A stretch of 64,000 bases of DNA, taken from positions 96,410,001-96,474,000 of the forward strand of contig NC_043005.1 of NCBI RefSeq assembly GCF_006345805.1. The letters are read 5' to 3'. Under the pieces are notes generated by a model. That model did not search any database, had not been told where the DNA came from, and was given only the letters and a program-made list of their open reading frames with translations. Below, one piece after another: positions 6,175-63,140 of the stretch (position 1 is its first letter; each line of letters opens with the position of its first letter). The DNA comes from Octopus sinensis. Lineage: Eukaryota. The position numbers and the translations under genes were made by a program.

Positions 6175-6240
6175 GATACAGTCAGCAGATCAGCATTTGA
6201 TACAGTCAGCAGTCAGCATTTGATACAGTCAGCAGATCAG
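6175..6240. repeat. Short tandem repeat, ~23-24 bp unit (gatacagtcagcagatcagcattt) x ~2.7
   Basis: Directly visible. Confidence 0.85.
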
Positions 6241-6248
6241 GACTGTAC

Positions 6249-12984: not shown

Positions 12985-13045
<61 letters not shown>

Positions 13046-26100: not shown

Positions 26101-29100
26101 ATATGGTGAATGTAAGGTGATTGGTGTAATTATAAGGTGATTGGTGTAATTATAAGGTGAATTGGTGTAATTATAAGGTGAGTGGTGTAATTATAAGGTG
26201 AATTGGTGTAATTATAAGGTGATTGGTGTAATTATAAGGTGATTAGTGTAATTATAAGGTGAACGAAGAGACAGTGTTAAAATATGTTCACTGCTGTAGA
26301 GGCATACACACTTAACAGACTCCCTGATGTGCATATATATACAGCATGTACTCACAAACAATTGTAGAGTCAAAGTCACAACCAAGTGTGTTAGAGTATA
26401 GAAACCTGAAATAGACAGTCCGAAAAATAACAAAAATTGAAGAAATAAATGGTTGTGGGATTTGAGAAGTGAATGGGGCAAGAATCAGAAGTTGAGCTAG
26501 ATTATGATATCATGTGGAGCGGAGGTTCTCAGGTTGAAATATGGAAATATGCACCTTAAGTTGGTAGGTCTCTCTCTCTCTAACACCTATTTCTTTATTG
26601 CCCACAAGGGGCTAAACATAAAGGGGACAAACAAGGACAGACATAGGTATTAAGTTGATTACATCGATCCCAGTGCGTAACTGGTACTTAATTTATCGAC
26701 CCCGAAAGGACGAAAGGCTAAGTCGACCTCGGCAGAATTTGAACTCAGAACGTAACGGTAGACAAAATGCCTATTTCTTTACTACCTACAAGAGGCTAAA
26801 CACAGAGGGGACAAACAAGGACAGACAAACGTATTAAGTCGATTACATTGACCCCAATTGCATCACTGGTACTTAATTTATTGACCCCGAATGGATGAAA
26901 GGCAAAGTCAACCTTGGCGGAATTTGAACTCAGAACGTAACGGCAGACGAAATACCGTTAAGCATTTTGCCCGATGTGCTAACGATTCTGCCAGCTCGTC
27001 GCCTTAACACCATGACATTGGAGTACAGATACTGATTAATTATCATGGAAGAGCTGAGGCGAGCTGAAGTAACGAGTTATGAATTTAAGGATTTACAAAC
27101 CATTATTAAAGTATCAACCATCTCTCAAATAAAAATATAAATTGAAGTTATATCAAAGGTATGGTTTTGAAGCATATACTTTGGATCTGTTGTTAAGACA
27201 TCACAAGTCACATCTACAAAGAAAATTATCCTATGAATCTAATTTTCAGCAAAAATTTTTATATAGGCATAGGAGTGGCTGTGTGGTAAGTAGTTTGCTT
27301 ACGAACAACATGGTTCCGTGTTCAGTCCCACTGCTTGACACCTTGCGCTAGTGCCTTCTACTATAGCCTCGGGCCGACCAAAGCCTTGTGAGTGGATTTG
27401 GTAGACGGAAACTGAAAGAAGCCCGTCGTATATATGTATGTTTGTGTGTCTGTGTTTGTCACCCCAGCATCGCTTGAAAATCGATGCTGGTGTGTTTACT
27501 TCCCCGTAACTTAGCGGTTCGGCAAAAGAGACTGATAGAATAAGTACTTGGCTTACAAAGAATAAGTCCTGGGTGTCGATTTGCTCGACTAAAGGCGGTG
27601 CTCCAGCATGGCCAGTCAAATGACTGAAACAAGTAAAAAGAGTATATAATGAAAAAAAATTTTTTTTTTGCATAAGAAACTAAAAAAAATAGCTAAGGCA
27701 TTTCAAGGGAAAAGTATTTTGTGTATGAAAGAAAAATATGTATTGCCAATTAGAATTTTCATCTATACATATTCCTTCATATTTCTGTTGTAGATCACCA
27801 AAAACTGCTCCTGTGCAGGATAAACCACCATCAGCAGTTTCTTATGATACCGTTGATGCACCTATTGGGCTTAACAAAATTAAAGATACTGTTATTTCAT
27901 CAATGTTAAAAAGACCTCACAAGAGACGCTATGGTATGGGTCTCTTGGGTTCCATGCTGCACCAAAGAGTAAAAACTCGCTTACCAGCTGATGTCAAGAG
28001 TCAACTTGATGAGTTAGATAATTACAGGTAAGTAAAAGAAAAAATAAAATAAAAAATATGTTGTTTGTTAGTGGTCTCCACCATTGAACAAGATTGTTAT
28101 ATATGTTTATACTTCAATAACATCATGTTATAATCTATCAGATTATTCTGTTTGTCAGATATTTGTATGTTTGAGTATTATGCTTTCAACCATCTTAATC
28201 ATGAAAATCATTGTTTAACGTCCACTTTTTCATGGTTGCTTGGGTCTGATGGAATTTGTTGAAGCAAATTTTCAGTGGCTGGATGTCTTTCTGTCACCAA
28301 CCTTACTTATTTCCAAGTACGGTAATATTCTCCATGATCAGACATGTTTTCATGGAAGTTTGGAAACAAAAGATACCACTTGTATGATAGTGATGTGTGT
28401 TTACAACTATCACATGAAGTCAAGGCAAGGAGACAATAACACACACACACACACAAATAACAACAGATGGATTGTAGTTCACTACAGCTTTTTCAGGTGT
28501 GTCTTCTATTGATGTTACATCATGCAAAAAGAAAAATCCATTCCATTTTCATCAAGTGGCTTCATGTAAGAATTAGACATTTTGAACATCTCAATAACAA
28601 GTAAAAAGTCCCATTTTGACTGCTGACCAAAATTCAGTCAGAGAATTGTGATTGTATGTATAACTGGGGTATAAAATCCATGTTTATTTTAGCAAGTATG
28701 TATTTGTCTTCAAGTATTTCTACATGATAGCAATATCACTGATCTGACCTTGGGGATTTACTATTTAAGTACCTGTTACACTTAAACTCTGAAATTTTTT
28801 TTCTCACAAACACACACACACACACTCTCTCTCTCTTTCCCTCTCTCTATGTGGAAGACATGGGACGAAGTATTGAAGGCCAATCTCAAAACGGCAAACC
28901 TCATGAAGGAGATGACAGAGGACCGAGCTATGTGGCACATTGCTCCACTTGAGGAAATCCATCCACCACAACAGAGTTGAGATCCTAAACCCAAGGTGCC
29001 ACATTAAAAGCTTCCAATGCACTCTGTAAAATGGTTGGCATTAGGAAGAGCATCTAGCCATAGAAACTGAGCCAAAACAGTCTTTGGAATCTTGTGTGAC

Positions 29101-32100
29101 CCATTCCTTGCCAGTTCCTGTCAAGCTGTCCAATACATCCAGCATGGAAAATGGATGTTAAATGTTGTTGTTGATCTATATATCTACATATATAAACACA
29201 CACACACACACACACATCATCCATGTGGACACATTTCTTTCCTATGACATTACAATCTTCTTTCACACACTGTCTTGCAATCCGAAATACTTCAGTTCTT
29301 TGGTCCTCAGGTCACTGGACATTGGCAAACTTCTTCTTTTCTGCTTCTTCCTTGGTTATATATACCTGTCTCCTAGCTTCCCTTCTGGCTATCTGATACA
29401 GTTTCCTGCTACCCCCACTCTTCCAGTTCTTCCAGGCTTGCTTCTTTGCTCTAATGGCCCTGTATAGTCAACTGCTACAATAGAAAAGGGGATGCTGTAG
29501 ATAGAAATGACTAAAGAGGCACCAAATTGCTAGATCAGGTGATGAAAGTTACAGAGAGGGTCATAGCCCAACTAATTAGGAAAAGAGTTAGCTAAGATGA
29601 GATGCAGTTTGGGTTTGTGCCAGGTAGAAGCACCATTGATGCTATATTTCTGGTAAGGCAACTGCAGGAGAAATACCTAGCCAAAGATAAACCTCTGTAC
29701 TTGGCTTTTGTTGACGTGGAGAAAGCCTTTGACAGGGTGCCTCGATCCCTTATCTGGTGCTCAATGTGGAAACTAGGGATAGATGAGTGATTGGTAAGAG
29801 CTGTACAAACCCTGTACAAGGATGCTGTCAGTAAAGTGAGGGCTGGCAATGAGTATAGTGAAGAATTCCGGGTAGAAGTAGCAGTCCTCAGCCCTCTCTT
29901 ATTCATCATGGCCCTCCAGGCAATAATAGAGGAATTCAAAACAGGCTGCCCCTGGGAGCTCCTCTATGCTGATGACCTTGCTCTAATAGCTGAGTCGCTA
30001 TCAGAATTAGAGATGACGTTTCAGATGTGGAAGTAAGGTCTAGAATTGAAGGGCTTCAGAGTCAACCTAGCGAAAACCAATGTCCTAGTAAGTAGGAAGG
30101 CAGACAAATCACAAACCCCTTCAGGTAGATGGCCCTGCTTGATCTTTAGAAAAGGTGAAGGTAGAAACTCCATAAGATGTACCTGGTGTAAGCTATGGAC
30201 ACATAAGAGGTACAGCAACATCAAAGGAAGGTTAACTGGGAAGATAGTTTTTGTGCACAGGGACAATAAACACTGAAGATGTATTATTATATCATTTCTG
30301 TACTTACTACTAGAACTTATCTGTTGCGATGACAAGGGTTCCAGTTGATCCAATTAACAACAGAACATCCTGCTTGTGAAATTAATGTGCAAGTGGTTGA
30401 GCACTCCATAGAGACCCTTAACATAGTTCTTAGGGACATTTAGCATGACACAAAATGTGACAGGGTCAACTCATTGAATTACAGGTACTTCTCATTTTTG
30501 CCAGCTGCGTGGACTAGAGTAATGTGAAATAAAGTGTCTTGCTCAAGGATACAATGTGCTGCTGGGAATCGAACTCATGACCTTACAATTGTGAACTGAA
30601 TACCCTGACCACTAAGCCACATGCTTTCACATTTCTGTATTTAATATTTTTCTGTATGTATATTATTATCAAGATGTGTAAGTTGTTAATACAACTTTGG
30701 GCTGCAAAGGAAATGTTATAACACATTGAAGATAAATTTTAATGTATGGTTGTGTGGTTAAGAAATTTGCTTTCAAACTACATGGTTTCAGGTTTGACTC
30801 CACAGCGCAACACCTTGGGTTGGGCAAGTCACTGGTCTTCTACTACAGCTTTGAGTTAACCAGTTCCTTGTGCATAAGGTTTGGTAAAACGTTTCTGTTC
30901 TTATGTGGTAAACTTTAATCTGTCATCTGGTTTGGCACCACCGTCAGGCTCTTGAGTGCTTTTAGCAGAGGTTCACTCTGTCACAAGCATTCAGGCCAAG
31001 TGTCTAGTCTTAGGAGAACTTCCTACCACCAATCCTGTTGGCCCTGAAAAGAGCCAAAGAACCTTTGACTAAACCATTAAAAAAAGCAAACAAAACAAAA
31101 CAAAAAAAAACACCCACCATACTTAGCTCTGCTGTATTCTTATACAATAAGACATCTTATTTATTTTCTTTGTTCAGGCCTTATTTCACATACTGGGTCA
31201 CCTTTGTACAGATTATTGTCTTCCTGGTCTCTATTTCTGTTTATGGTCCTGCTCCTTTTGGATTTATGGAATATGCTAAATCAAAACCTGTGAGTATCTT
31301 ACATGTCAATCTAGAAAAACAAGTGAACAAAAAAAAAAGCCAAACTTTCTTTTGATAGTTTAGAATTTTTTTTGTTATTTATTTTAAAGTATGGTACTTA
31401 GTTATCATTGTCACCTTGCTTATATTTTGGTTCAAGTTTTCATGATGGTAAGAGTTGAGTGCATTTAAATTATAGATTCTTTTCAAAGGTCTCAGATCCT
31501 GCATCATATTGTATGAGGTTTTGACTTGGAAGTTGGAACTGGATGGTCTTTCTGTTGACCACTGGCTTCATAATATTATTACAAGTTAATACTTGTGACA
31601 TTAATTTATTTTATTAATTATAGAGCATGTTTATTAATAAGAATAACAAAGCTTTTTTTTTTTTGCTGTAAAGTTTACTATAAATTTGTATGTGTGTGTG
31701 TTTGTGTGCATGTGTATTACATGCTTATTTTCAAAAACGGAAAAAGAGCAAAAATCACACATAATACACATTTATGTATTATATAAAAGGAAAATAAATT
31801 AAGAGGAATAATTCAGGAGCACCAATTATTCAACTTTTGGATAAAATTAAGGCAGGTGTACTGAATGTTTTGAAATTTCCCTCTGGATTAGAGCAGAGAT
31901 TCTCAAGAAGGATGAGAGATCATTTCAAGAAATTAAGAACACATTCACCAATGAAGGAAATGACAAAGGACTGAGATGATTGATGATTCACTGTGCATGA
32001 AAAGAGCTATCTATCACAAGAATAACGATGTCCTAAATGCAATCTATGGAAGCTTGTAACCCATTCTAAGACCATGTCAAGCATTTCCTTGTACTTCATT

Positions 32101-33381: not shown

Positions 33382-33450
<69 letters not shown>

Positions 33451-36400
33451 TTCATGAAAAAAACAAAAGACGAAGACAGGTGGCTTACAAAACAAACAGA
33501 TGTATTAGTATAACGCTCGGGAATTGAAAAAGTCTTACGTTTCGAGCTTACGCTCTTCCACAGAAAGGAACACAGGAATAAACAAGGAGAGAATAAAAAA
33601 GTGTGTAGTGGTTACCGAATTTATTTATGTATGTATGTTGTGTGTATGTATGTGATTGTTGTAAATGAATGTCGTTTGTTATTTTGCAAAAGTATGTCTG
33701 TCTATGGAGAAATATTACCTTCCTTTGAAACATGTAAGGACTGGCAATGGGAAGGTCAACCATCCGTATAAAATCTGTGTCAGTAAACTCTGTCCAACTC
33801 ATGCAAGAAAAGGAAAATGATGATGATGATGGTGATAAAGTGTTCTGGTACTGAAGGCAGAAAAAAAAACACATTTCACAATATTCTTTCCCTGGACTAC
33901 AGAGAGTAGTATTTGATACATTGGTTGTTGTTTTTAATGTACGAGGGAACACTGAAAAGTTCCTGGCTTTAAGAGTAAGGCTTGGTTGGAGGCCCAATCT
34001 TCCAAGTTCTTTTGCAGGGTTTAGGAAAACTGAAGAACTGCTGCAATAACTGTGTGAATCTGAAAGGGGAATATGTTGAATAGAATCCTAATTAACTGAT
34101 CCTCCTGTATTTCCTTTTATCCAAAGCCAGGAACTTTTCAGCACCTCTTTGTAATCTGTCTAGAAAGTTTTTGACTAATTAATTTGGTCCACATTTTATA
34201 TTGATGAGTATTTATTTCTTTGTTAAACTAAAAGGTGTAAATATTCATTTCTAGCTTTTTTCTTTTGTTGTTACTTCAGGTTCTGATGCCAAGCCTAGCA
34301 ATTGAATATAAGGAATACCGAGATGTTGCTAATATGTGGTTTGGTCCTCGTCAGGTAACATACAAAGTATTATTAATGTATTGTTGTTTGACCCTTTTAT
34401 TATCATATTTCTGTTGATATTCACTGATTTTTGTTTCAATTAATTATGAAATCCTTTGCATCAAATGGCAGAATCATGTCCCCAACAAAGATGTCCTCAA
34501 GCAAGCAGGAATACCAAGCTTGTTTGCACTCCTCACACAAAGACGAATGAGATGGCTTGGACATGTTAGCCGTATGAAAGATGGCAGAATCCCCAAGGAC
34601 ATACTCTACGGAGAGCTTGCTAGGGGTACTAGGTCTGTGGGTAGACCGATCTTACGTTACAAGGATGTTTGCAAAAGGGACATGAAGGCCTGCAACATCA
34701 ATATTAGCGGTTGGGAGGCAGTTGCCGGCAACCGTGGAGATTGGCGACGTACCGTAAAAGAGGGAATACAAAGGAGTGACAGAGAGAGAGAGGAGAAATG
34801 GAAAGACAAGAAAAGACGTCAACGAGAAACTATGGCATTACAACCAGCCAGGAACAGTCTTCGCTACATTAGCGGTACCTGCCAGAGGGAGTGTTTGTCC
34901 AGGATAGGACTACACAGCCACAGCAGGAAATGTATCAGGACATGAAATGTAAAAGCCAGACTAGATTATTTTATGTGCAACTCCATTGTCTCCCGAGACA
35001 AAAAGGATGCCTACAACAATTATGAAAATAATGATGAATTTAATAATACAACTTCGTCATTATTAAGCTGATGTTCTGGACTTAAATTAACCTAAAATTT
35101 TGTATGGATGGTTTTAATTTAGATAATCTTAAACAAGAAAATTGTATCGTAGAACCAGAGGCAGTCTCAGGCGGGTTGTTATAAAAAGGGTTAAGGAAAA
35201 TGTGTTGAAAGAACAAGTTAGACAATGACCGAGAGCAGCTAGCCAAACTAGGGGCCTAGGCAACAGTAGAACCGCAATGATCCATAGTAGAGGATAGTAT
35301 TGGTGATGGAGATGATAAGATCCGCAGAAGTGAATAGATAGCAGTGAAAGAGCAATGATCTACAGTAGAAGGAAGTCAGTTGTGGGGGGACAGAATCCAC
35401 AATAGGAGAAAGACCATTATGGTTGATCAACAGTGATCAGTATTAGAGGATAAACAGTGGTGGTGGGGGCACTGTTCTGTACTAGTGGCTGACAGTATCC
35501 TGTTTAATGCCTTGTGGTATTGATTTTCTTTCCCATTCCTCAATAATCAGGGAAAATGAATCCAATTGTGTATGTTTAAGTAATTATTTAAGTATTTAAT
35601 ATGCCAGATATAAATGTCATATACAGTTTCATTATATTCAAATGCAATGAAACTGAAGTGCAACAAAAGGTTGAATGATTTTAGAAATAATGGTTTCAAA
35701 TTTTGGTACAAGGTCAGCTGTTTCAAGAAAGTGGGCAAGCTGATTATATTGACCCCAACGCTCAACTGGTGCTTCTTTTACCAACCCCTTGCAGTGATGT
35801 CAGTATGTGACAACCTACAATTTTACAATTGCATGCGAAAAAGAGGGGTCACCATCTTGTATGTAAAACGACAAGAAAAATAAGAACTTGTGAGATGTTC
35901 AAAATAAGTCATAACGTATTTATTGCTGGATGCAATGTGTTAACAAATAAGAATAGTTTGAAAGAAAAGGCTTGTAACATATTACATGAACATACTTTGC
36001 TACCATATGTCTCAAAGCAAATGAGGCGAATATGTGTACGTGCGGGTGTGTGTGTGTGAATGGCATGGCTCAATGTGTACACCTAGGAACTGTTAGGCAA
36101 AAGGAGTGTGAAATTAGAATTGCGTAGTAAGAGATGAATGAGAAATCTCTGACTTCCATGTCATCTGGAAATTAATTGAAAACTTCTAGAATATCTGAGG
36201 ATTTTTGAGACGGTCGAGGGAGATTACTCTTGTTAGATCCCTTTTTCGTTTTATTTTCCTGCTTGACCACCAAGGGTCACTTACACCCTGAAAGGATGAA
36301 AGTAAAGTTGACCTTGGCAGAATTTGAACTTTGGATGCAAAGGCAGATGAAATGCTGAGAAGCATTTTGCCTGGGATGGTAATTTTTCTTCCAGCTCACC

Positions 36401-39400
36401 ATATTAATGATTTTAGAAATATTAACAACTGTTGCAATAATTAATATTAATTGGTAAGCAGTATTTAGCAAAAACTATATCTTATTGTTCATAAATCTGC
36501 TGCTCTGAGTTCACATATACAAGGTTTCTTATCTTTGCTAGTCAGCTGTCTACTGTCTACTTCAGATGTATAGCTTTAAATGGGAACATTATTTGGTGTT
36601 GATTTATAAAAAAACATTCTGTATTTATCAGTGATATAGTGAAGGGGTCTCTGCTTGATGGTCAAGAGTTTCGATGCCCCTATTTTAATTAGACAGCATG
36701 ATAAGCAAAAGGAAATATTGCATCCCTTTACGCCTACATCTGGAGATGACCGGACACCTTGACTCCCCACGTGCCATGCCTCTTGTCAACAAAAACTGTT
36801 TAACTTTGAGATGTTGGTATATATAATAAAGGCAATAACTAATAGGTAAAATACATATTAACATATGTACACACACACACACACAGAGGCATACGTATAT
36901 ACTTACAATAATGTAATTACATAGGTAAATATAAATACATATCAGTAACATACACATATATTTATAACATATCTACATAGGTAAATATATACATAAACGA
37001 ATATAACTGCTTGGGTTAGATATACAAAATAGGCGTAGGAGTGGCTGTGTGGTAAGTAGCTTGCTAACCAACCACATGGTTCCGGGTTCAGTCTCACTGC
37101 ATGGCACCTTGGGCAAGTGCCTTCTACTATAGCCTCGGGCCGACCAAAGCCTTGTGAGTGGATTTGGTAGATGGAAATTGAAAGAAGCCTGTCGTATATA
37201 TGTATATATATATAAATATATATAATTATATATCATCATCATCAAATCGTTTAACGTCCGTTTTCCGCGCTAGCATGGGTTGGATGGTTCGACCGGGGTC
37301 TGGGAAGCCAGGAGGCTGCACCAGGCTCCAGTCTGATCTGACAGTGTTTCTACAGCTGGATGCCCTTCCTAACGCCAACTACTCTGTGAGTGTAGTGGGT
37401 GCTTTTTACGTGCCACCGGCACAGGTGCCAGGGGAGTCTGGCAGCGGTCACGATTGGTTGGTGCTTTTAACGTGCCACCGGCACGGAAGCCAGTCAAGGC
37501 AGTGCTGGCATCTGCCACGTTCGGATGGTGCTTTTTATGTGCCACCGGCACAGGTATCACACCTACTATTTCCATTGATATTTATTTCGATGTTCATGTA
37601 CTTGACTCAATAGGTCTCCTCAAGCACTGCGGGTTGTTCTGAAATCCAAGGTACTTTGAATGGGCAGGGGCTATGCGGAACTGGTGCAGGAAGCAGCCCG
37701 GGTCTTTGCAGTCACAGCATATCTCTAGAGGTCTCGGTCCTTCGTCATTGCCTCTGTGAGGCCCAATGCTCTGAGGTCATGCTTGACTACCTCATCCCAT
37801 GTCTTCCTGGGTCTATCTCTCCCCCTGATACCTTCACTGACATTACACATCCAGCGGATCATGTTAGCTTCATTTCTTTCAAGTCTACGCATGTCCTCTG
37901 CAGTCACAGCCCATGTTTCACTACCGTGAAGCATGGCAGTTCGCACACATTTATCATACAATCTACCTTTCACTCTGAGCGAGAGACCCTTTGTTGCCAG
38001 TAGGGGTAGGAGCTTTCTAAACTTTGCCCAGGCTATTCGTATTCTAGTGGTGACACTCTCTGAGCATCCACCTCCACTACTAACTTGGTCACCCAGGTAG
38101 CGGAAACTATCAACTACTTCTAGTTTCTCCCCCTGGAGTGTGATGGAATCTGTTTTCTGAGTATCTGTGGTGTCTATTGTCCCTGTGGATCTGCCACACA
38201 TGAAAGCTATCTTGTCAGTTAATTTCCCTTTGATGTTGCTGCACCTCTTATGCGTCCATAGCTTACACTGGGTACACCTTATGGAGTTTCTACCTCCTCC
38301 TTTCCTACAGATCGAGCAGGGCCACCTGCCCGAGGGTGTGTGTGCTGAGTTCGTCTTTCTGCTTACTATAACTTTGGTCTTTGCTACATTTACTCTAAGG
38401 CCCTTTGATTCTAACCCTTGCTTCCACGCCCGAAATTTCTTTTCTAGTTCCGGTAGTGATTCTGCTATGAGAGCCAGGTCATCAGCATAGAGGAGCTCCC
38501 AGGGGCAACCTGTTTTGAATTCCTCTGTTATTGCCTGGAGGACTATGATGAATAAAAGGGGACTGAGGGCTGAACCTTGGTGTACACCTACTTCTACCCG
38601 GAATTCTTCACTATATTCGTTGCCAATCCTAACCTTGCTGACAGCCTCTCTGTATAGGGCCTGTACAGCCCTTATTAGCCATTCGTCAATCTCCAGTTTC
38701 CGCATTGACCACCAGATAAGGGATTGGGCGACCCTGTCAAAGGCTTTCTCCAAGTCCACAAAAGCTATGTAGAGGGGTTTATCTTTAGCTAGGTATTTCT
38801 CCTGCAGTTGTTGGATCAGGAATATAGCATCAGTGGTGCTTCTACCCGGCACAAAACCGAACTGCATTTCATCTAAGCAAATTCTCTCCCTAATGAGATG
38901 GGCTATGACCCTCTCTGTGACCTTCATCACCTGATCCAACAGTTTAATACCCCTGTAGTTATTTCTATCTATAGCATCACCTTTACCCTTGTAGCAGTTG
39001 ACTATGGTGCTGCTACGCCAGTCATTGGGTATGACTCCATTATGAATTACCTGGTTTACAATGCGGGTGACTAGGCCATAACCCACACAACCAGCTGTTT
39101 TAAGCATCCAATGTGCTATGCTTACTGCACCTAGGTTTCCCAAGCGGTCACCCATCTAAGTACTGACTAGGCTCGACGTTGCTTAACTTCGGTGATCAGA
39201 CGAGAACCGGTGCTTTCAATGTGATATGGCCATATATATATATATATATATATATATAACGGGAAGGTTTACGAAAATAAACAAAAGACGAAGGCAGGTG
39301 GAGTACAAACAAACAAATGTATTAGTATGGCGCTCAGGAATAGAAATAGAGCAAGTCTTTTACGTTTTGAGCCTATGCTCTTCCACAGAAAGATACACAG

Positions 39401-41189
39401 AAAAGAAACAAGGAGAGAAAAAAATGCGTGTAGGAGCTAACGGTCCATCATGGCGTTCTGACTTCAGGTAGAAGTCAGAGGTCAGGCGTTAGATGCTAGA
39501 GGGATAGTAGGGGAGATAACAGGGTCAAGTGACTTCACCCCAACACGAAGGTGCGTGTGTGTATAAGAGAGTATGTATGTGCGTGTGAAATAGGGCTGGT
39601 GGTCTGGACGTGTGTATGTATGTATGTGTGGGTGTGGAGATATGGGGGTGGGTGTGTGGGTGGTGTGTTATGATATGTGTATGTATGTGTAGGTGTAAAG
39701 ATGTGGGGATAGGTGTGTGGGTGGTGTGTTGTGATGTGATGTGTAATGTCATATGGTGTAGTGTGGTGTGATGTTGTGGGGAGGTGGGGGGCGAGAGTGG
39801 GGAAAGCCCATGCGGGGTGTGGGTTCGGATGGGGTTGGGGTAGAGTGGGGGTTGTGGAGAGAAGAGAGAGAGGAGGGGGAGGGGAGAGAGGAAATGAGGA
39901 GGAGGGAGGGGATGGGGAGAGAAGGGGAGTGAGGGAGCAGAGAGAAGGGGAAGAGGGAAGAAGAGGAGGGAAAGAGAGTAGGGGTGAAAAGATGAAGGAC
40001 TGAAGAGAAGTAGGAGTCGGGGGGGGGTAGGTTAGATGCAAAGGAGGGGGAGAGTTGAGCCCAAATGGTGTAAAAGAGCGAAGAGAGAAGATTAATCTCT
40101 GTTTACAACGCAAGTGGGAATCCGGATGGCCTCTGTGCAAGGACAATCTCAATACAGACAGATGTTGCAAGGAGTGACGGTGGAGCGGAAATGGCGTGAG
40201 ACTGGTGTGTCATTGGCGAGGCGGATGTCTCGGAGGTGTTCCGCAAACCAGTCAGCCAAGCAGCGTCCTGCTTGTCCGATGTACAGGGAATGGCAGAGAG
40301 AGCAGGAGATGCAATAGATGATATTGCTGGAGGTGCAGGTGAAGGAGTCGATGATGGGTGCCAGTTAGGAGGGTGGTGTTGGAGAGTTAAGGGCAAGTGC
40401 GACAACGTGGGCGGGAGCAGGGGAACGAGCCAGGTTGGGAGGTAGGGTCAGGGAAGAAGCTGTGGACCAAGAGGTCTCGTAGGTTATGGGCTTGTTAGAA
40501 GGAGGGAAGGGGTCGGTTAGGGAAGAGGTGTGAAGTGGACGGGTCGGACTGGAGATGTTGGAAAGCTCGAAGAATGGTGCGTTGGAGAGGTAGGGTGGTG
40601 GGGTGGTAAGTGAGGGGAAAAGGGAGGCGGGAGACTGCAGGGTGGGTTCGGGGAAAAGGGAGGCGGGAGACTGCAGGGCGGGTTCGGGGGAAGAGAGCAG
40701 ATGCACGGTCTACGGAACGTGCTCTGGGAAGGGCGGTGTGGATAGTGGTGAGGGGGTATCCACGTAGGATGAAGTGGCGAGCCATGAGTTGAGACTCAAA
40801 GTCATGGTTGTCACTACAGAGCCTACGTAGACGGAGGAATTGGGAATAGGGGATGGAAAGCTTGGTGTGTTTGGGGTGGGAGGAAGAGAAGTTTAGGTAT
40901 GAGTGTGAGTCTGTGTTTTTGTAGTGAATGGAGGTGGTAAGAGTGGAGTGATGAATGCTGACCGAAATGTGAAGAAAAGAGACAGAGGTGTTGGAAATAG
41001 TGGAAGTGAAGTGGAGGGCAGGATGGAAGGAATCTAGATGTTCACGGGAGAGTGAAGTGGCATCGATAATGTCGTCAATGTAACGACCGTATAGTTCGGG
41101 AGTGGGACCAGTGAAACTAGAGAATATTTGGGCCTCAACATAGCCAACGAACAGGTTCGCATAGTTGGGGCCCATTCGCGATATATGTA

Positions 41190-41244
<55 letters not shown>

Positions 41245-44200
41245 TTGTTCCCCCCAACATCGCTTGACAACCGATGCTGATGTGTTTACGTCCCCGTAAC
41301 TTAGCGGTTCGGCAAAAGAGGCCGATAGAATAAGTACTAGGCTTACAATGAATAAGTCCTGGGGTCGATATGCTCGACTAAAGGCGGTGCTCCAGCATGG
41401 CCACAGTCAAATGACTGAAACAAGTAAAAGAGTATATGTTTATACATGTAAATAGAGAGAAAGCAAAGACGGAAAAATTTTCAGATAATGCATATTCAAG
41501 TATAAGTATATAGGCATTTATAGATTAATAGAGCAAACTTACACAGTGCAAAAATGTAGAAAATTAAAGGGGAGCAGGTATGGTGGTACAGGTCCGATAA
41601 CTGTTTCTGGGGTCTGTAGCTACTTTGTAATGTCGCAGATGTATTTCACAATAATATGCAATCAATAATGGAAGAATATAAACATTGGGTAGATCTAGCC
41701 TTTGTCTTCAAGGTGGAGAAATCAAAATCTAACATTTCAAATGATAATGCAGGGAAATTTAAAGGTAAAATGGGTGAAGAGGAAAGCAAGCAGTTGTGAG
41801 TGGAGGGAGGAAGTAGGTAGCTCGTTTGATTCTTGCACTGAGTGGAGTGTTGTGTCCTTGAGTAGTGTGCTTACTTTCTCAATGCTTGTTTACTCAGTTG
41901 AGCACATATACTCATGGCAGCTGGAGAAGGAGCTTAATCCTTTAACACACTGACATTCTTTTGAACGACTCTTGTTCACTTTCCAGGTACATTACTGTAT
42001 ATACTTTATATGCACTTTTGACAAGTTGTGGTGCACCTGAGCATTGTATACAATAATTTCATTATTATTATGTTCAGTTGCCTTAAACACCAAAGAAAGT
42101 GGGATAAAATCTGATAAATTTTAATGGGCTGAAGATTTAGATTTTACCTTTTTTTAATTGGTAAATATAAGCACCTATCAGTCACACATGCACCCACTTA
42201 CCTGCCCGATGGTTGAGTGGCCAGTGTCTATGATAATACTCAGTATTACTCTTTGTAGACAATAATTCTAATAGATATTCATATATGAGAATGGATTGTT
42301 AATAAGAATCTGTTATCTCCACAACAGTACTTTCTGATCAGAAACAGAGAAGCAACTCTTAAACCACACTGTACAGCCCTGTTATTTTATCAAAGTCTAA
42401 TATTTTGTTTACCTCTAACAGTTATTTTTGTATTTTTCCTAGGCTGATCTCATTCACTTGGGGGCCAAATATTCTCCATGTATGCGAAAAGATAAGAACA
42501 TATTGGATGCTTTGGAAAAAGATCGAAACCTTGAGCGCGAATCAGCTTGTTGTGTCCGTAATGATGGATCCGGTTGTTCCCAGATGACTGAAAACAGATG
42601 CAGTGTAAGTAACAATAAAGTATTTGAGTATCAGGATTATGAAGAGGAATTCACAAGAGGTTATATAGACATCAACCATTTTGTTACCATATTGTTATTT
42701 TCTTCAGCTACCTCTGTTAACCCTTTTGATGCCGATGCCAGTACCCCCTGACTGGCTCTCGTGCCGGTGGCACATAAAAAGCACCAGCCAAACATGGCCG
42801 AGGCCAGTATCCCCTGACTGGCCCCTGTCCCAGTGGCACATAAAAAGCACCAACTACATTCTCGGGGTGGTTGGTGTTAGGAAATTGTGTCATCTTGTCA
42901 TTATCTCATCCTTTCATGCTTACTGGTTCTACATTATTGAATATGCGATACAAATAAGAAGATGATATTCTTTCAAATGCAGAGTTACCGCTAGAACGGC
43001 AAAAATACTGGGTAACTTACCCTTACAAGGTGGACAAATTTGCAACAACCAGCCATGGGACTTGAACCCATAACCCTTAGAGACTCGGGTTGGGTGCTTT
43101 ACCATTAAGCTAAACTGCCCACTGACAAATTCATCTGCCGAATTAGATACTAAAAACTTTAGCTTTATATAACAACCATGTTTGTGTAAAGAAACAAATA
43201 TTTGAGTTCCATGGTTGGTTGTTGACAAATTTTTCTACCTTTTTAATGGTAAGTTACCCAGTATTTCTGCAACTCTGTGTTTGGAAAAATATAATCTTAT
43301 TTGTATTGTACAATACACATTTCAACTCCTGATAAAAAAAAAAATTGTTTGCTTACATTTATACACATGATTGAATATACATGTTTTTTTGTTTTGTTTG
43401 TAAGGAGGATATGACAACCTCTTTAGTGCTGGTACCACATTAAAATATACTCTGTACCCTCTGGAAGGTGGTTGGTGAAAGGAAGGGCACCCAGGCATAG
43501 AAACCATTCTGAAAATGAAATATACAAGCATCAGTCTGTGAGGGCAGTAGCTTCCAATCATCATCATCATCATCATTGTTTAACGTCCGTTTTCTATGCT
43601 AGCATGGGTTGGACGGTTCGACTGGGGTCTGGGAAGCCATGGAGGCTGCACCAGGCTCCAATCTTGATCTGGCAGTGTTTCTATGCCCTTCCTAACGCCA
43701 ACCACTCTGTGAGTGTAGTGGGTGTTTTTTATGTGCCACCGGCACAGGTGCCAGGGCAGGCTGAAGAACTGATTTTGACTGTGATGACCTGTTCCAACCT
43801 ACCAGTATGGGAAAGTAGATATAAACATGTTGATAATAATAGGGTGTGATTTGAAGAAGATGTGGCTGCTATTTCTACAAATTGAGAAACTGCTTATCAG
43901 TTCCTTGTTTAGCTTGTAAGAGCAGAGATAAATAAGCCTGGAAAGGTTTGAAGAAGTAAAAGTTATTCCTTGTTGTTCTAACACACCATTATTGGAGCCA
44001 ACGAAAGTGCCTCTATAAAGTATCTCCACATACTAGAAATAAGTCAAATCTTCCTCAAATTACAGTTATTTTGTCAGAGCCATAAGTTTTGCTATTGGTT
44101 GCTCTTCCTACTTCTAACTTGTAAAGAAGGAGTGAACTGTTTAGTCAGTCAGGCAAACTGAGATATGTAAATTGTGGAAAAAAACCCCAAAAAAACACTG

Positions 44201-50200: not shown

Positions 50201-51075
50201 TGAGTACGAAAGGGTGTCACAGTGTCGAATGATGTTGATGAATTGATACTGTCTTTACCTAATATAAAACCACTCGTCTAATCTACTGATTAGATGGCAA
50301 GCAAAGTTTGAATAAAAGCCTTTTTTTGAATTGACTTATGTCATTATTAGATTTGTGTTCTTTGCATTGTTTTGTTAATTTGTCATGAAAATCTGTAGCC
50401 TAAGAAGGCCATAGCTGTATAGCCAGAGACACAACTTCTTTCTTCCAATCATCAGACTTACTGCCATTTAGCTCCCTGCTTTTCTTTGATGTTGTTTGAT
50501 GACCACCATTCTATTCTTCCTCTACTACTTTTACTAAGGATTTGTCCATGTAAGGCCACTTTCACTGGAGGTTTGTTATTTATATATCTATTGATAAATT
50601 ATATTTAATTTGTATCTTATGCAGGTTGACTGTTTGAGTCGAATATGTGGCATGATACCATTCCTCTACAAAGACAAACCTGATCAGTTTTATAGATTGT
50701 TCACAACATTGTTCCTTCATGCAGGGTAAGTATTATCATCATTACTGTCATCATCATCATCGTCATCACCATCATCATCATTTGAGAGCAGACCATACTG
50801 ACATATGAGTGCCATAAAAATTTTAAGATGGTCTGATGCTATTTGAGGAGGATTTGGCTCCTATTTCTAGCAGATGGTGTGATCTTATTGATGCTACCTT
50901 GTTGACTCGACTATTTAAGTAATGCATTAATACATGAGGTTATTGAATTGAGCTGTTAACAAAATAAGTTTAGTCGTCATCATCAGTATCATCCTTGTCC
51001 TGATCATTATCATTTAACATCCACTTTTCCATGCTTGTATGGATGAGGCAAAATTTGTTGAGGTAAATTTTTCTC

Positions 51076-52513: not shown

Positions 52514-55500
52514 CAGATGCACCTAGGTTTGCATGGATGTATGTGTGTACTTTATATTTTATTTCTACATTCAAGCATTGTTTCTAACTCTGCTGGTGTT
52601 AATCTCTCTAAATATTCTAGTGTTTTCATTGATTTATTTCAGTTTCATCCACCTGATACTTACAGTGTTATACCAAGCTTTTGTGATGCGAGATATTGAA
52701 AAATTAACTGGTTGGTTGCGAATATCAATCATATATCTTGGTAGTGGCATTGCTGGCAACCTTGCAAGTGGCATTTTTCTACCATATCAAGTGGAGGTAT
52801 TTTATTCTTTTCAATTAATAATGTTAATTAGGAGAAACATTGTTTTATATGTGTTGTGTATATTGCTTTCTTTCTTTTGCTGAGCTTACTTTTGAGAAAA
52901 GATGTTACAATATAATTTAATGACAGAAAATGCCTGCCACTGGATCAAGGGAGCCCGCTTAAGGTGCTCAGGGTCTGATTTAGGTTGGACCTTCTGGTGG
53001 GTAAAAACTAGGAAGTGGTTGCAAGTAGAGTGGCATTCTGACTCTCACAGAGATGTCTCTGAAGAGCCAAGTGGAAATTAATGATGACATGTAAGCATGT
53101 ACTGAGAGTGATACACTTGCAGAAACATCTGGACCCACGTTGGAGAAGGCATGAAGCTCTCCACTGTTACTACCAACTCTTCAAGGTGTGAATAATACAA
53201 CTAGCTCACATCTGCTTCTTTCCTTCAACTCAGGCTTCACAAAAGCAAAGACCTTGTTGAAATTGCACCAAAAAGCCTTTGTTGAGAGACAAGAGAAAGA
53301 CTGAAACTGAAATAAATAGAAGCCAGCCCTAAATTGAAGGCCATAAGACACAACAGTCATATAAAAGGTCTGTTACAAAACCAAAATACAAAAGGTTTCA
53401 ACACTAACATCACCTTCATCACAAGAAGAAAACCCAATTTTACAAACACTCACAGCATGAAAACAAAAAAGAAACACCTGAAAAACAAATTGACCAACAG
53501 ACACACTCTCAGGTACTTACTTCATTAACTTCATTATTGTTCAGAAGAGCAACTTTGAATTGATTGAGGAAGTAATTAACAGCAAAAACGTCTTAATTGG
53601 GGAAGGCTTTGTTGAACTCCTCCCGAAAACTCCATTGGACAGAATGTTAATCCAAACAGATACGAATGTGTTTCTGTTTGGATTTAAAACAGAAATTCCC
53701 GTAGGACATTGGAGTGTTTAGTCAAATAAAACTTACTAGAAACACCTTTCTCCACTCTCCCCTCAGCCAAAAAGAAGACCGTTTCAACAATCATCCTTGA
53801 AGTCAAAGATAAATAAATCCATTTTATTTTCCCTAATCTAAATGGCTACACTTAGAGTAGGTTGTGTAAATGCTCATGGCCTAGATTTGGTTTGGAAGAA
53901 GACTATGAGATATTCTCATCTTGTGGTCTATCTAGAGTGAGTGGCAGAGCAGCAATGCTATTCCAAAAATCCTTAGGTCCTAAAGTAAGGGCAGTTTTCT
54001 TGGAACTAGACGGTAAGTTGGTGGTCCTAGACTTGAATGGCAGTGAAGGTGGTGCCATTAAAGATTGGGGGCTATTTATGCTCCAACAGGGGCTAGAAGG
54101 CCAGATTTCTTCCAGTGTCTAGAAGCATTGTGAACAGTGGAGATGTGACATGGCCACAAAACCACAATTGAATCTTTGACAAATCAGGACAGGCACATGC
54201 TACTTGGTTCTGAACAGATGTGTGTGATTTTCCAGCAGCACTTTGCACAGCTGTTTGGGGAGGGTAATGGTTGACGATAGTAGCAGACTTTAGTTCATAT
54301 GTAGACATTCTGCCACAGCTCTCAGCAACTGTCATGAGGTTCTGTGAAAAGCTGATAATGGCCACAGAAATATAGGCGGTGACGAGCAATTGTACAAGTC
54401 ACAGATTGCCTGGTTTGGATGGTCTGCCCTATGGATTCCATGCATTCGAGCCAGATTTGTTTCGTGGCCTCTTGGCAAACTTCTATTGTAACTAGCAGCA
54501 GAACAGGGGAATTCCTAGTGCTGTTAGCCAGAGTGTGGTGACACTGCTGAGGTAGGACACTGACACTGGGGATGTGCTAGGGAATTTTTGGCCCATAACT
54601 CTGCTAAACTGAGAGTTTAAGATTTTGGCCAAGGTGTTAATGAAAATATTGGTGCTTGTTGTTAGCAGTCTGGTTGTGGAGGTGCAAACATGTAGAATCC
54701 TAAACAGATCTATCCATCACAACCTCCACCTTATGTGATACATCATTGAAAGGGCTGGAATTAAACCTGGTCTCTGTGGGGCCCTCATCAATTTGGATCA
54801 GTTGAAAGCATTCGATAGCTACTTAGAACCTGTCCTGAAAGTGACTGGTTTCAGATATATTTTCAGAGGCTGGATTGTTGCAATGCACAGTGGCACCTGC
54901 TCAGTGGTAAGAACTGGGATGAGGTGACAGACAGGGTGGTCAGATTTAGCCAGAAATAGGCAAAGAGGAAGCTGTCCCTGAAAGGTCAGGCAGAGGTGGC
55001 AAATGCCTACATTGCTTTTGTCATCATTTATCACCTGATCTTTGTGCTTTTCCCCAGTTACTGCTTGATCAGGTGGAAGGGGCGTGTTTCAATGGTTAGG
55101 CAGTTAGTCTGCTGCCTGCACCCTCTGCACAGGCACGCTGTGGCTTCTGATGCACAGACATGCATTCAGATTGTGCCACCTGCAATGATTTCTAGACAGT
55201 GAACATGTGTGTGGGCTCTATGGAGCTGCAGTTCTGGGTGAAGGATAGACTGAGACTCAGCACCTGGCACCTAGAATGTTGTCAGGTGTTCCACTAAGAA
55301 TTAGTAGCAAGAAAGTGCGACAATGTCCTCAGGGAGACCCTGGACATTGATGATAATAAATTGGCTAGACTGTTCTGGAGGACTTTCCAGGGGACTACTG
55401 TGGATAATTTCCAGATGTCTTTGGCTTGGCCATGCTACCAGTTTGAGATCAATTCTACAGGAACAGATATGTTGTCAGATGAACTTATCTGAGGTGTGTG

Positions 55501-57940: not shown

Positions 57941-58619
57941 TAGGTTTTACTTGTAACAATTGTCAATGTTGTTGCTGTTGCAGTTGTCTATATATATTTT
58001 TTTATAAGCTTCATTTATTTTTTAAAATTTTATAACGACAGTGACAATGAAGTTTTTAAAGTTGTTGTTATTATTGCTGTTGTTGTTTAGCCCCAGGTTG
58101 ACCCTGATCAAACAGACTTTGATCAAAAGTATTCCTACTATAAACAGCCTGCCCTTTTAGGGGTATCTAGGAAACTTACATTATTCAATGCGTCCTTTTT
58201 TTTTCCCATGACATTAATGATTTGAGGGAGATTTGGTTGCTATTTCTAACAGGTTGAGTGACCACATGAAGGCTCCCTTAGACCAGAAGTTTTTGAATGG
58301 TCTTTGTTTGTTGGTATTCTTGATATTGTTGTCTTAGTCTCAAGAAAATTCACTGTTACCTCAAAACAATAACAAACTTTTAAGCTTGCAACTATTAATC
58401 TCTTGGCCTTAAATCATCATCATCATCACCATTAGCATCTACATCATTATCATTGTCACCACCACCATCATCATCATATCAATCAAAACGTTGGCTAAAC
58501 CTCAACAAGAGCTGAGTATACACTCAGCACCCATAAACACTGCTGGCGTGTCTAGTTCATCAGACCATAGACTAATAAGCACACACTTGTAAAATAACAG
58601 ACTCTGAGTAATGCTGTAG

Positions 58620-58863
58620 ATATATAAAACATAATATATAATGTATATCACATGTATTATATATGTATTATATATATATATTTTATATATGTGTGTGTGT
58701 ATGTGTATATATGTATATATTTGTTCAATGGTTTGTCTCCTTTTAGATTATACAAATGAAAGGCAATTGTCTTTAATAATAATAAAGATCCCAGATATTG
58801 GAGCTGCCAATAAATTTGTATTTTCTAGCATACTGCCAATATATCTTTATTTATATATATATG

Positions 58864-58896
<33 letters not shown>

Positions 58897-58961
58897 GATA
58901 TTATATATATATAGATATATATATATAGATATATGTATGTATGTATTATATATGTATTATA

Positions 58962-58995
<34 letters not shown>

Positions 58996-59091
58996 TATAT
59001 ATGTATTAGATATATATATATATATATGTAGGATATATATATATATGTATTATATATATATATTATATATGTATGTATGTATTATATATGT

Positions 59092-59135
<44 letters not shown>

Positions 59136-59145
59136 TATATATGTA

Positions 59146-59196
<51 letters not shown>

Positions 59197-60769
59197 TATA
59201 TATGTATTATATATATATATATATATATATAGATATATATAGTATATATATATATATGGATTAGATATATATAGATATATGTATGATATATGTATTATAT
59301 ATATATATATAAGATATAGATAGAGAGATATATATATATATATGTATAGATATATAGATATATATATGTATATATATATATAGAATATGTATGATAGATA
59401 TATAGAGATATATATAGATAGATATAGATATAGATAGAGAGATATAGATATATAGATATATTATATATATATGATATATATATATAGGTATTATATATAT
59501 ATATAGATATAGATATATAGATAGATATATATATAGAGATATATATATGTATTATATAGATATATATAGTATATATATATAGAGATAGATATAGATATAT
59601 GTATTATATATATATAATATATGTATTATATATATAGATATATATGATATATATATATATATATATAGATAGATAGATATATATGTATTATATAGATAGA
59701 TATATAGATATGTATTATATAGATATAATATATATATGATATATATATATAGATAGATATAGATATATATATATGTATTATATATATATAGATATATATA
59801 TATATGTATTATAGATATATATATATGTATTATATATATATGATATAGATATATAGAGATATATATATATATAGATATAGATATATTATATATATGATAT
59901 ATATATGTATTATAGATATATAGATATGTATATATAATATATATAGATATATATGTATTAGATAGAGATATATATATATATATAGATGTATTATATAGAT
60001 AATATATTATGTATATATTATATATAGATATTATATATATATAGATGTATTATATATATATATGTATATATATAGATTATATATATATATATATGTATTA
60101 GATATATATAGATAGATATTATATATATATATTATTATATATATATATGTTATATATATATATGTATGATAGATATATATATGTATTATAGATATATATA
60201 TATAGGTATTATATATATAGATAGATATTATATATATAGATATGTATATATATAGTATTATATATATATTATATATGTATATATAGATATATATATATAT
60301 ATATATGTATTAATATATATATATATGTAGGATATATATATATATATTGTATTATATATATAGATATAGATATATGTATTATATATATATATATGTATTA
60401 TATATATATATAATATATATGTATTATATATATATATATGTATTATATATATATATATAGATATATATATATATGTCTTATATATATATATATATATAAT
60501 GTATTATATTATATATATATATATATATGTATTATATATATATATATATGTATGTATTATATATATAATATATATATGTATTAGATAGATATATATATAA
60601 TATATTATATATATATGTATATATATAATATATTATATATGTATTATATATATTATATATATATATGTATTATATATATATATATATATATGGATTATAT
60701 ATAGATATATTATATATATGAGATATATATAGATAGAGGTATTATATATATATATATATATATATGTAT

Positions 60770-60800
<31 letters not shown>

Positions 60801-60880
60801 GTATTATATATATATGTATTATATATATAATATATATAGATATATAGATAGATAGATATATATATATAGGTATATATATA

Positions 60881-60919
<39 letters not shown>

Positions 60920-61363
60920 TTATATATATATGTATTATGATATATATATATATGTATTATATAGATATATATAATATATATATATATATATATAGTATTA
61001 TATATTATATATATAGATAGATATATATGTATTATATATATATATATATATATATAGTATTATATAGATATAATATATATATGTATTAGATATATATATA
61101 TTATATATGTATTAGATATGTATTATATATATATAATATATAGATATTATATATATATAGATATATATATATGTATTATATATATATATATATATATATG
61201 TTATTATATATATATATAGGTATTATATATATATATATATATATGGATTATATATATATAGATTATATATATATATATATATATCTATATATATATATAT
61301 GTATTATATAGATATATATATATATATAATATGTATTATATATATATATAGTATGTATATATA

Positions 61364-61407
<44 letters not shown>

Positions 61408-61540
61408 TATATATAATATATATATATTATATATATGTATATTATATATATATATATTATATATATATATATATGTATTATATATTATATATATAGATAT
61501 ATTATATATAGTATATATATATATATTATATATATATATT

Positions 61541-61583
<43 letters not shown>

Positions 61584-61682
61584 GTGTATTATATATATAT
61601 ATATATATATATATGTATTATATATATATATATAGATATATATATATATGTATTATATATATTATATATATATATATATATG

Positions 61683-61722
<40 letters not shown>

Positions 61723-62581
61723 TATATATATTATATATATATATATTATGTATTATCTATATATATGTATTATATATATATATGTATTATATATATATAT
61801 ATATGATTATATATATATATATATGTATTATATATTATATATATATGATTATTATATATATATATATATATAATATATGTATTATATATATATATATTGT
61901 ATTATATATATATATATTATATATATATATATATGTATTATATATATATATATATGTATGATATATATTATATATATATATATATGTATTATTATATATA
62001 TATATGTATTATATATATATAATATATTATATATATATGTATTATATATATATATATATATGTATTATATATATATATATAATATATATGTATTATATAT
62101 AATATATATATATGTATTATAATATATATATATGTATATTATATATAATATATATATATATATATGGTATATATATATATATATATGTATTATATATATA
62201 TATATCTATATATATATGTATTATATATATATATATATGTATTATATATATATATATCTATATATATATGTATTATTATATATATATATATATATGTATT
62301 ATATATATGTATTATATTATATATATATATATATGTATTATATATATATATATATGTATTATATATATTATATATTTATATATATTATAATATATATATA
62401 TATTGTATTATATATATATATATTGTATTATATATATATATATATGTATTATATATATATATATTATGTATTATATATATATATATATGATTATATATAT
62501 ATATATATGTATTATATATATATATATATATGTATTATAATATATATATATATGTATTATATTATATATATATTTTTTTTT

Positions 62582-62623
<42 letters not shown>

Positions 62624-62977
62624 TATATATCTATATATATATATATATTATATATATATTATATTATATATATATTTTATATATAATATAGATATTATAT
62701 ATTATATATATATTATATTTATATTATATATATATATTTATATATAATATATATATATATTTTATATATATATATATATATATAATATATATATTATATA
62801 TATATGATTATATATATTATATATATATGATATATATATTATTATATATATATGATTATATATATATATATATATGATATATATATATATATATGATATA
62901 TATTATATATATATGATTATATATATTATATATATATGATATATATATATAATATATATATATTATATATATATGAT

Positions 62978-63028
<51 letters not shown>

Positions 63029-63140
63029 TATATATATATGATATATAATATTATATATATATGATATATATATATTATATATATATATATTTATATGATA
63101 TATATATATATATATATATTATATATAATATATATATACT
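58620..63140. repeat. ~4.5 kb degenerate (TA)n microsatellite with recurring atGTATTatatat and GATA interruptions
   Basis: Directly visible; almost exclusively A/T with periodic G. Confidence 0.97.

Follow-up and report, generated by a model that had tools for sequence, protein, structure and literature searches.

We analysed a 64,000-nt stretch of the Octopus sinensis genome (contig NC_043005.1, positions 96,410,001 to 96,474,000; hereafter the window, to whose positions all coordinates refer) and found that it carries a copy of 5S rRNA fused to the 3′ part of a long interspersed nuclear element (LINE). In our assessment this composite is probably a chimeric retrocopy that was dead on arrival and arose in a single round of target-primed reverse transcription, most plausibly by the LINE's own reverse transcriptase (RT). 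In minus-strand order (39258 to 37195), it comprises a (TA)13 tract, the 5S rRNA copy, an 11-nt filler, 1.9 kb of LINE 3′ sequence ending in (GAT)4, and a second TA tract (Table 1). This bears out, with small corrections, the layout that a first-pass annotation had proposed from the sequence alone (TA tracts, 5S, linker, 3′ part of an RTE-like LINE, 3′ untranslated region (UTR) and tail), including the common orientation of the 5S and LINE parts, both of which we place on the minus strand. The tail it had written as (ATG)n is present as (GAT)4, and the open reading frame (ORF) of 476 codons starting at an ATG inside the 5S was likewise recovered (37725–39155, minus strand; 476 aa). The linker that it had put at ~9 nt is also there, although with a length of 11 nt by alignment, and the 5S described as near full length has a complete 3′ end but is missing its first ~6 nt.

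The 5S part was recognized by a match to Rfam RF00001 at 39119–39237 on the minus strand (95.5 bits, E 1.9e-19; gathering score 38). Model positions 1–6 of this match are filled by the TA repeat, and the genuine 5S sequence spans 39231–39119, starting GGCCATATCAC. Nearly all of the internal helices are intact, with non-canonical pairs found mainly in helix I, the 5′ strand of which is replaced by TA; the internal control region is retained. A 3′-complete and structurally intact copy is what would be expected if mature RNA had been copied from its 3′ end. Furthermore, no T-run terminator for RNA polymerase III (Pol III) follows the 5S 3′ end, where TAGCACATTGG stands instead, and no native gene-like sequence lies upstream of the copy; for these two reasons we regard it as a copy of RNA rather than of a gene. 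A native 5S rRNA gene was ruled out by the replacement of ~6 nt at the 5′ end by (TA)n, the lack of a T-run and the single copy in the window, in which a permissive Rfam scan (E ≤ 1) returned no second 5S-like sequence. Most likely, the 5S came in as RNA together with the LINE, by template switching.

At the junction itself, the 3′ end of the 5S faces the LINE across a gap of only 11 nt. Protein alignments place this filler, TAGCACATTGG, at 39118–39108, with LINE homology starting immediately thereafter at MLKTAG, the ATG of which is at 39107. When compared with 5S nt ~12–22, the filler matches at nine of 11 positions (TAGCACATTGG versus TATCACATTGA), a level of agreement with 5S that about 1.2 % of random 11-mers attain (p ~ 0.012, in what was a post hoc test). 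This is only suggestive of a second, short 5S-derived piece; were the filler truly 5S-like, two RT jumps would follow from it. No cephalopod LINE copy that spans the breakpoint, and could show whether the filler is LINE sequence, was found; the second copy in the window and contig L001 both begin at the equivalent of ~39005, and the relative P0191 begins at ORF residue 31.

The composite resides within another repeat, a short interspersed nuclear element (SINE) present in many copies across the window. In its intact copies, a head is followed by an internal (TA)n(TG)n microsatellite and then by a 3′ body. The left half of the interrupted host copy (37029–37231) shows 89–92 % identity to copies at 12821–13023 and 27263–27439. 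When it is joined to the right half (41176–41432), the two together are 92 % identical to the intact copy at 27263–27640, with the break falling inside the microsatellite. Because the halves rejoin into a 92 % match, everything from 37232 to 41175 must be inserted material; the joined flanks thereby provide a paralogous empty site, the interval of which also holds a second insertion at 39259–41175. TA tracts touch both the 5S 5′ end and the LINE tail, and the 5S/LINE junction contains neither TA nor target DNA. Perfect (TA)≥8 tracts account for only 0.57 % of the first 58 kb of the window. As TA tracts bound the composite and are absent from its internal junction, the unit that entered the TA tract most likely held both 5S and LINE.

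A target-site duplication (TSD) framing the LINE alone, which the first-pass annotation had named, in combination with a linker matching native 5S spacer DNA, as evidence that would speak against a single event, was looked for at the locus and none was seen (the 5′ flank being the filler TAGCACATTGG and the 3′ flank ATATAATT). Its proposal of a single-event chimera, most plausibly produced by the LINE's own RT, is thus supported by the same orientation of the parts, the TA-bounded composite, and the lack of both target DNA at the junction and a T-run behind the 5S. We also weighed two independent events, whereby a 5S pseudogene would have landed in the TA tract and a LINE would then have inserted exactly at its 3′ edge, or the reverse order. 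The region is an insertion nest, with 3.9 kb lodged inside one SINE microsatellite, including the second retroelement fragment at 39259–41175, and TA tracts may be preferred targets, given that three of 11 LINE tails adjoin TA-rich sequence. Such a history would nevertheless have to leave a junction without a TA remnant, no TSD around the LINE alone, agreeing strands and a gap of merely 11 nt, as well as a 5S without gene-type terminator or upstream sequence. Moreover, retrotransposition of 5S RNA by itself would not be expected of a stringent-type LINE (PMC4476161), and we therefore hold two separate insertions to be very improbable.

There are, however, observations that weigh against a single event. 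Both flanks are TA microsatellite, leaving a TSD unreadable (the longest exact match, of 4 nt, is uninformative). The (TA)13 tract, taken as the upstream target flank, is either a remnant of the host SINE microsatellite or the tail of a neighbouring repeat, here called repeat X, since (TA)n plus X recurs at 33417–33608. As such, the composite may belong to a larger multi-part insertion extending from 41175 to 37232, and the exact 5′ boundary of the event is not proven. Finally, 11 nt is long for an untemplated addition, and the 5S origin of the filler is only suggestive.

With these points in mind, the sequence of events under single-step formation can be outlined as follows. An RTE-like LINE would have nicked a TA-rich site within the internal microsatellite of an older SINE, and its RT, priming on the (GAT)n-tailed RNA of the same LINE, would have copied some 1.9 kb of it. 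At a point within the ORF a little way upstream of the RT domain, the enzyme would have left the LINE RNA and resumed on mature 5S rRNA from the 3′ end, running to about nt 7. A brief stop on 5S nt ~12–22 may have yielded the 11-nt filler, which would make this a double template jump, and the cDNA end would then have been joined to the TA tract. Of these steps, the switch between templates is inferred, as is the source of the filler. Stringent-type LINEs (RTE and L2) have been reported to mobilize small RNAs solely as template-switch chimeras (PMC4476161), and double template jumps have been documented (PMC2104539).

A different route to the same arrangement would be the ligation of 5S to a LINE RNA fragment prior to reverse transcription, as RtcB does for U6/L1. 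RtcB requires a 2′,3′-cyclic phosphate end, which U6 possesses, whereas mature 5S rRNA is not known to carry one. Whilst the structure of the product is the same under both models, and ligation has been shown for U6/L1 (PMC6789731), simple ligation leaves the 11-nt filler unexplained and fits 5S end chemistry less well, such that we give this route hardly any weight. A target-specific, 5S-rDNA-seeking LINE was also considered and was rejected, as 5S is present on one side only, with SINE microsatellite on the other.

The LINE segment (39107–37232) is colinear with its relatives through RVT_1 and a PHD finger to the tail. A Pfam search with the 476-aa ORF returned RVT_1 at residues 64–267 (E 1e-29) and the PHD finger at residues 280–320 (E 1e-4), the LINE ORF remnant beginning ~47 residues ahead of RVT_1. 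The best PDB match of the RT was to the L1 ORF2p RT (E 5e-21), and R2 structures matched too. We identified 3121 homologues of the LINE ORF (E ≤ 1e-10), the best of them 66–75 % identical. These derive from marine-invertebrate and metagenome data and share 45–75 % identity, with the closest LINE matches reaching 66–82 % across searches. Two relatives in the database carry bacterial names, namely P0191 (an 'Escherichia coli' partial RT, 82 % identity) and P0004 (from a 'Herbaspirillum sp.' metagenome-assembled genome, 71 %); in both cases, host or contaminant DNA has almost certainly entered a bacterial assembly. Upon aligning the ORF with eight homologues, shared homology was seen to begin at MLKTAG, and the 16 codons that precede it comprise 12 of 5S and four (IAHW) spanning the filler. 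A search of a database of 5.8 billion proteins with the N-terminal 142 residues yielded 1599 relatives, and in none of the eleven that were aligned from among the best-scoring did we find the 5S-derived N-terminal peptide; those that reach the junction region instead read GPSGI(V)AEM(L/V)KA(A/S)G. The LINE part of the chimera starts at approximately residue 299 of the 832-aa relative P0023. Longer relatives (P0023; P0097/L005), none of which was retrieved full length, carry the C-terminal part of an apurinic/apyrimidinic endonuclease (APE) upstream of the RT. Given that these relatives extend upstream into APE, the copy in the window lacks the endonuclease together with about a third or more of the ORF at its N-terminal end.

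A second, older copy of this LINE was observed on the plus strand at 29464–30273, with 80 % nucleotide identity over 836 nt. Immediately 5′ of it, at 29219–29458, lies an inverted piece of the upstream ORF (P0023 residues 158–234), an arrangement that looks like twin priming. The breakpoint of this copy corresponds to position 39005, which is also where the unrelated contig L001 begins.

Downstream of the ORF, the 3′ UTR contains a tandem repeat with a 67-nt unit and a GTGCCGGTGGCACRTAAAAAGCACC motif at 37398–37553, as detected by Tandem Repeats Finder (TRF), and the tail of the chimera reads ...AAACGATTT(GAT)4, with the family tail being ...AAACGA(TGA)n. The terminal ~190-nt block of the 3′ UTR is conserved and, by self-BLAST, common to some 10 short copies within the window, which are SINE-like or truncated. 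From an eye count of alignment A4, the tail of the chimera diverges by roughly 3–4 % from the 11-copy consensus. The independent contig L001, at ~75 % nucleotide identity, displays the same 3′ UTR architecture and tail. In the distant relative L005, a 3′ UTR of 15 nt precedes a (GAT)5 tail, whereas the 3′ UTR of the chimera measures ~490 nt, with tandem-repeat expansion. A (GAT)n simple-repeat tail rather than poly(A) was thus seen in the window copies, L001 and L005. The ~67-nt unit, bearing the motif GTGGCACRTAAAAAGCACC, is found in tandem both at 37398–37553 and at ~1600–1830 of L001. Its copy number differs between the chimera, the short SINE-like copies and L001, and the array seems to expand and contract.

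Judged by sequence features, the LINE is consistent with an APE-type, RTE-like element. The earlier assignment to RTE agrees with the APE C-terminus upstream of the RT, the (GAT)n tail and the very short 3′ UTR of the distant relative, and it stands as a putative label. The database matches are unnamed, Pfam yields RVT_1 and PHD only, and a literature search for RTE clades whose ORF2 contains a PHD finger gave no classification that could be used.

Turning to the coding frame, a block of ~53 residues (...RRLRWxGHVxR...) that is present in all eight aligned homologues is cleanly deleted in the chimera (alignment A1, columns 743–795); at the nucleotide level, positions 1173–1339 of L001 have no counterpart between window positions 37840 and 37825. 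Additionally, the TAG that closes the frame replaces a conserved Trp codon (TGG>TAG; DRDL*RYAV versus DRELWRIAV in P0001), and relatives run 15–40 residues past this stop. At the other end, an in-frame TAG is situated directly upstream of the ATG inside the 5S, indicating that the 5S-derived start is a coincidence of frame. By a rough estimate, ~2 nonsense mutations would be expected in 1.4 kb at roughly 3–4 % divergence. As one was seen, plus the deletion, selection keeping the ORF open was rejected, and the long open frame reflects youth, not selection. Without an endonuclease, with a deleted and prematurely stopped RT frame, and with a 5′-clipped 5S, the product is most likely inert.

These features bear directly on the suggestion in the first-pass annotation that the composite could be a new 5S-headed retroelement encoding its own RT, which we find to be unsupported given the deletion and premature stop, the TTTT runs and the 5S that is 6 nt short. 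As to whether it is multicopy, neither a second 5S nor a second junction was found in the window, which holds one 5S versus about 12 LINE tails. Sense-strand TTTT occurs at 38853–38856, 38760–38763 and 38554–38557, which is 375, 468 and 674 nt from the 5S start, and because of these runs Pol III would terminate long before the 3′ tail. As stringent-type LINE machinery needs this tail, Pol III transcripts would stop far short of what is required. Transcription of the whole unit from the 5S promoter in the manner of SINE3 is thus at odds with both the internal TTTT and a 5S without nt 1–6.

Beyond the window, the junction 24-mer had no match in JGI metagenome contigs, which appear to hold no cephalopod DNA, and a 22-mer from the 3′ end of octopus-type 5S had none in JGI metagenome or GTDB genome contigs, again apparently without cephalopod DNA. 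IMG/VR yielded no relative, and the 476-codon ORF had no record in the contig index. The protein database is similarly without cephalopod proteins, the best match to the iRhom exons described below being 66 % and the best LINE matches 66–82 % identical. As the DNA and protein collections seem to be without cephalopod sequence, these negatives say little about octopus genomes.

A competing explanation is that we are looking at one copy of an amplifying 5S-headed family with the same junction throughout, a long SINE3-like or proto-SINE element that would be transcribed via the 5S internal promoter or by read-through and mobilized in trans by intact LINEs via its 3′ tail. The composite does retain the 5S internal control region and an intact LINE 3′ tail, but Pol III transcription would come to a halt at its TTTT runs (375, 468 and 674 nt), well before that tail, and the 5S is without nt 1–6, whereas Pol III-driven copies should begin at +1. 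SINEs with 5S heads and RTE tails do exist, as exemplified by CoeSINE5 and HaSE3 (PMC5786205), yet one 5S in 64 kb stands against about 12 LINE tails, and the 5S-derived N-terminal peptide is in none of the aligned best-scoring relatives. The junction 24-mer is also missing from the DNA collections, themselves apparently without cephalopod DNA. In Octopus vulgaris, a 2026 repeat annotation lists four 'SINE/5S' families (9.8 Mb), one of which has 7 recent insertions that total 42,242 bp, or about 6 kb apiece (PMC13282606). In that species, some long repeat containing 5S may thus be multicopy, although the 'SINE/5S' label, the sequences for which are deposited at Zenodo (10.5281/zenodo.19138903), is automated. 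Taken together, we consider an amplifying family to be unlikely. It is similarly unlikely that the element belongs, in slightly decayed form, to a family of long cephalopod retroelements with a 5S head and a LINE body, possibly the one that appears in the O. vulgaris annotation as 'SINE/5S' with recent copies of ~6 kb. If true, this family, with its RT coding sequence, would represent an extant stage between a LINE and a SINE3-type SINE.

Table 1. Features of the 5S/LINE composite and of the SINE that hosts it (window coordinates)
Feature	Position	Strand	Basis
(TA)13 tract	39232..39258	.	TRF period 2, 13.5 copies, 100 % matches; adjoins 5S 5′ end
5S rRNA retrocopy, nt ~7–120	39119..39231	-	Rfam RF00001
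11-nt filler TAGCACATTGG	39108..39118	-	LINE protein homology begins after filler
5′-truncated LINE ORF remnant (RT, PHD finger, C-terminal region)	37725..39107	-	Pfam, homologues
In-frame deletion site, ~159 nt (~53 codons)	37826..37840	-	Alignment with relatives
TAG stop closing the 476-codon frame	37725..37727	-	Sequence and alignment
LINE 3′ UTR	37245..37724	-	TRF, self-BLAST, 11-tail alignment
(GAT)4 microsatellite tail, LINE 3′ end	37232..37244	-	Sequence
Second TA tract, imperfect	37195..37233	.	TRF; adjoins LINE tail
Host SINE left half: head and start of internal (TA)n	37029..37231	+	Identity to window copies
Host SINE right half: (TA)n(TG)n and 3′ body	41176..41432	+	Joined-halves alignment

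Elsewhere in the window, the second insertion in the same SINE microsatellite (39259–41175, minus strand) lies upstream of the composite on the same strand. It consists of repeat X (39259–39433), a GT/GA-rich low-complexity stretch (39600–40170) and a 226-aa RT-like ORF (40495–41175). Repeat X is found again at 33417–33608 and adjoins (TA)n both times. The motifs of the 226-aa ORF (GPNYANLF...YIDDI...) resemble a Penelope-like RT; Pfam returned no match for it. Other, more distant LINE fragments were observed on the plus strand at 6210–7287 (RVT_1 match at 6249–6866) and 34454–34945 (C-terminal ORF at 34520–34945). The terminal exons of an iRhom/RHBDF-like inactive-rhomboid gene, with a Pfam Rhomboid domain, are located on the plus strand at 50652–50726, 52686–52799 and 57491–57934. 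The best database relative of this gene is just 66 % identical, and the chimera lies about 11–13 kb upstream of these exons on the opposite strand. Further along, 58600–63200 is occupied by ~4.5 kb of nearly pure TA/TATG-type microsatellite or satellite (87 % A+T, with GC down to 6 % locally). A weak tRNA-like Rfam match on the minus strand at 43047–43119 (29.9 bits, at threshold) was not called by ARAGORN, which identified no tRNA-like SINE heads in the window; the match probably marks the head of a SINE, not a gene. A 6.5-kb tandem triplication, suspected from the spacing of repeats, was checked and rejected.

In the reading that we prefer, the locus offers a clean, dissectable mollusc case of an RTE-like LINE RT jumping onto a cellular Pol III RNA. 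It would extend a phenomenon known from mammals (L1), a fungus (MGL) and a lizard (RTEX/L2), and would capture in a single place the initial step of the accepted model for the birth of 5S- or tRNA-headed SINEs. Since RTE LINEs and SINEs abound in octopus genomes, a genome-wide census of such junctions could reveal the frequency with which heads are sampled and the reason for the success of tRNA heads. The chimera, being a single and most likely inert copy, has no evident consequence for its host.

The structure matches known LINE-mediated chimeras from mammals, Anolis and a fungus, and to call it without precedent would be too strong, in light of the U6/RTE-clade chimeras in Anolis (PMC4476161) and the 5S-headed SINEs with RTE tails (PMC5786205); for a 5S/RTE-type chimera in a mollusc, we found no description in the literature. 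Doucet et al. (2015) described U6/RTEX-2 and U6/L2 chimeras in Anolis carolinensis, interpreted as products of template switching at target-primed reverse transcription, and concluded that stringent-type clades form only chimeras, via template switching (PMC4476161). Like these, the octopus composite places a sense small Pol III RNA 5′ of a 5′-truncated, stringent-type LINE (PMC4476161). It differs from them in its 5S partner, mollusc host and 11-nt filler, and in a TA-microsatellite target without a clean TSD. With the mammalian U6/L1, U3/L1 and 5S/L1 chimeras (Buzdin et al.) it shares a bipartite structure, a single insertion and a 5′-truncated LINE (bioRxiv 10.1101/2025.02.02.635956), whilst belonging to another LINE clade and bearing a (GAT)n tail, not poly(A). 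Most human 5S/L1 chimeras, moreover, reportedly carry the 5S in antisense orientation and cut short at nt 46 or 90 (bioRxiv 10.1101/2025.02.02.635956), whereas the octopus 5S is sense and nearly full length, as in U6/L1. The MGL chimeras of Magnaporthe likewise involve a non-L1 LINE and show evidence of double jumps (PMC2104539), and if the filler is 5S-derived, the octopus product would be a tripartite 5S/5S-fragment/LINE molecule comparable to the tripartite chimeras of Magnaporthe and mammals. The MGL products differ, however, in their fungal host, in having WEIRD and Mg-SINE as partner RNAs, and in their clean 14-bp direct repeats (PMC2104539). Lastly, the combination of a 5S head with an RTE-type LINE 3′ end is shared with SINE3 (Kapitonov & Jurka, 2003), CoeSINE5 and HaSE3 (PMC5786205, PMC3272025), and the proposed birth of such 5S-headed SINEs is a template switch that adds a small-RNA head to a LINE-derived body (PMC5786205). 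Those elements are short, multicopy and Pol III-transcribable, whereas the octopus composite comprises 1.9 kb of LINE with internal TTTT and is shown here as one copy.

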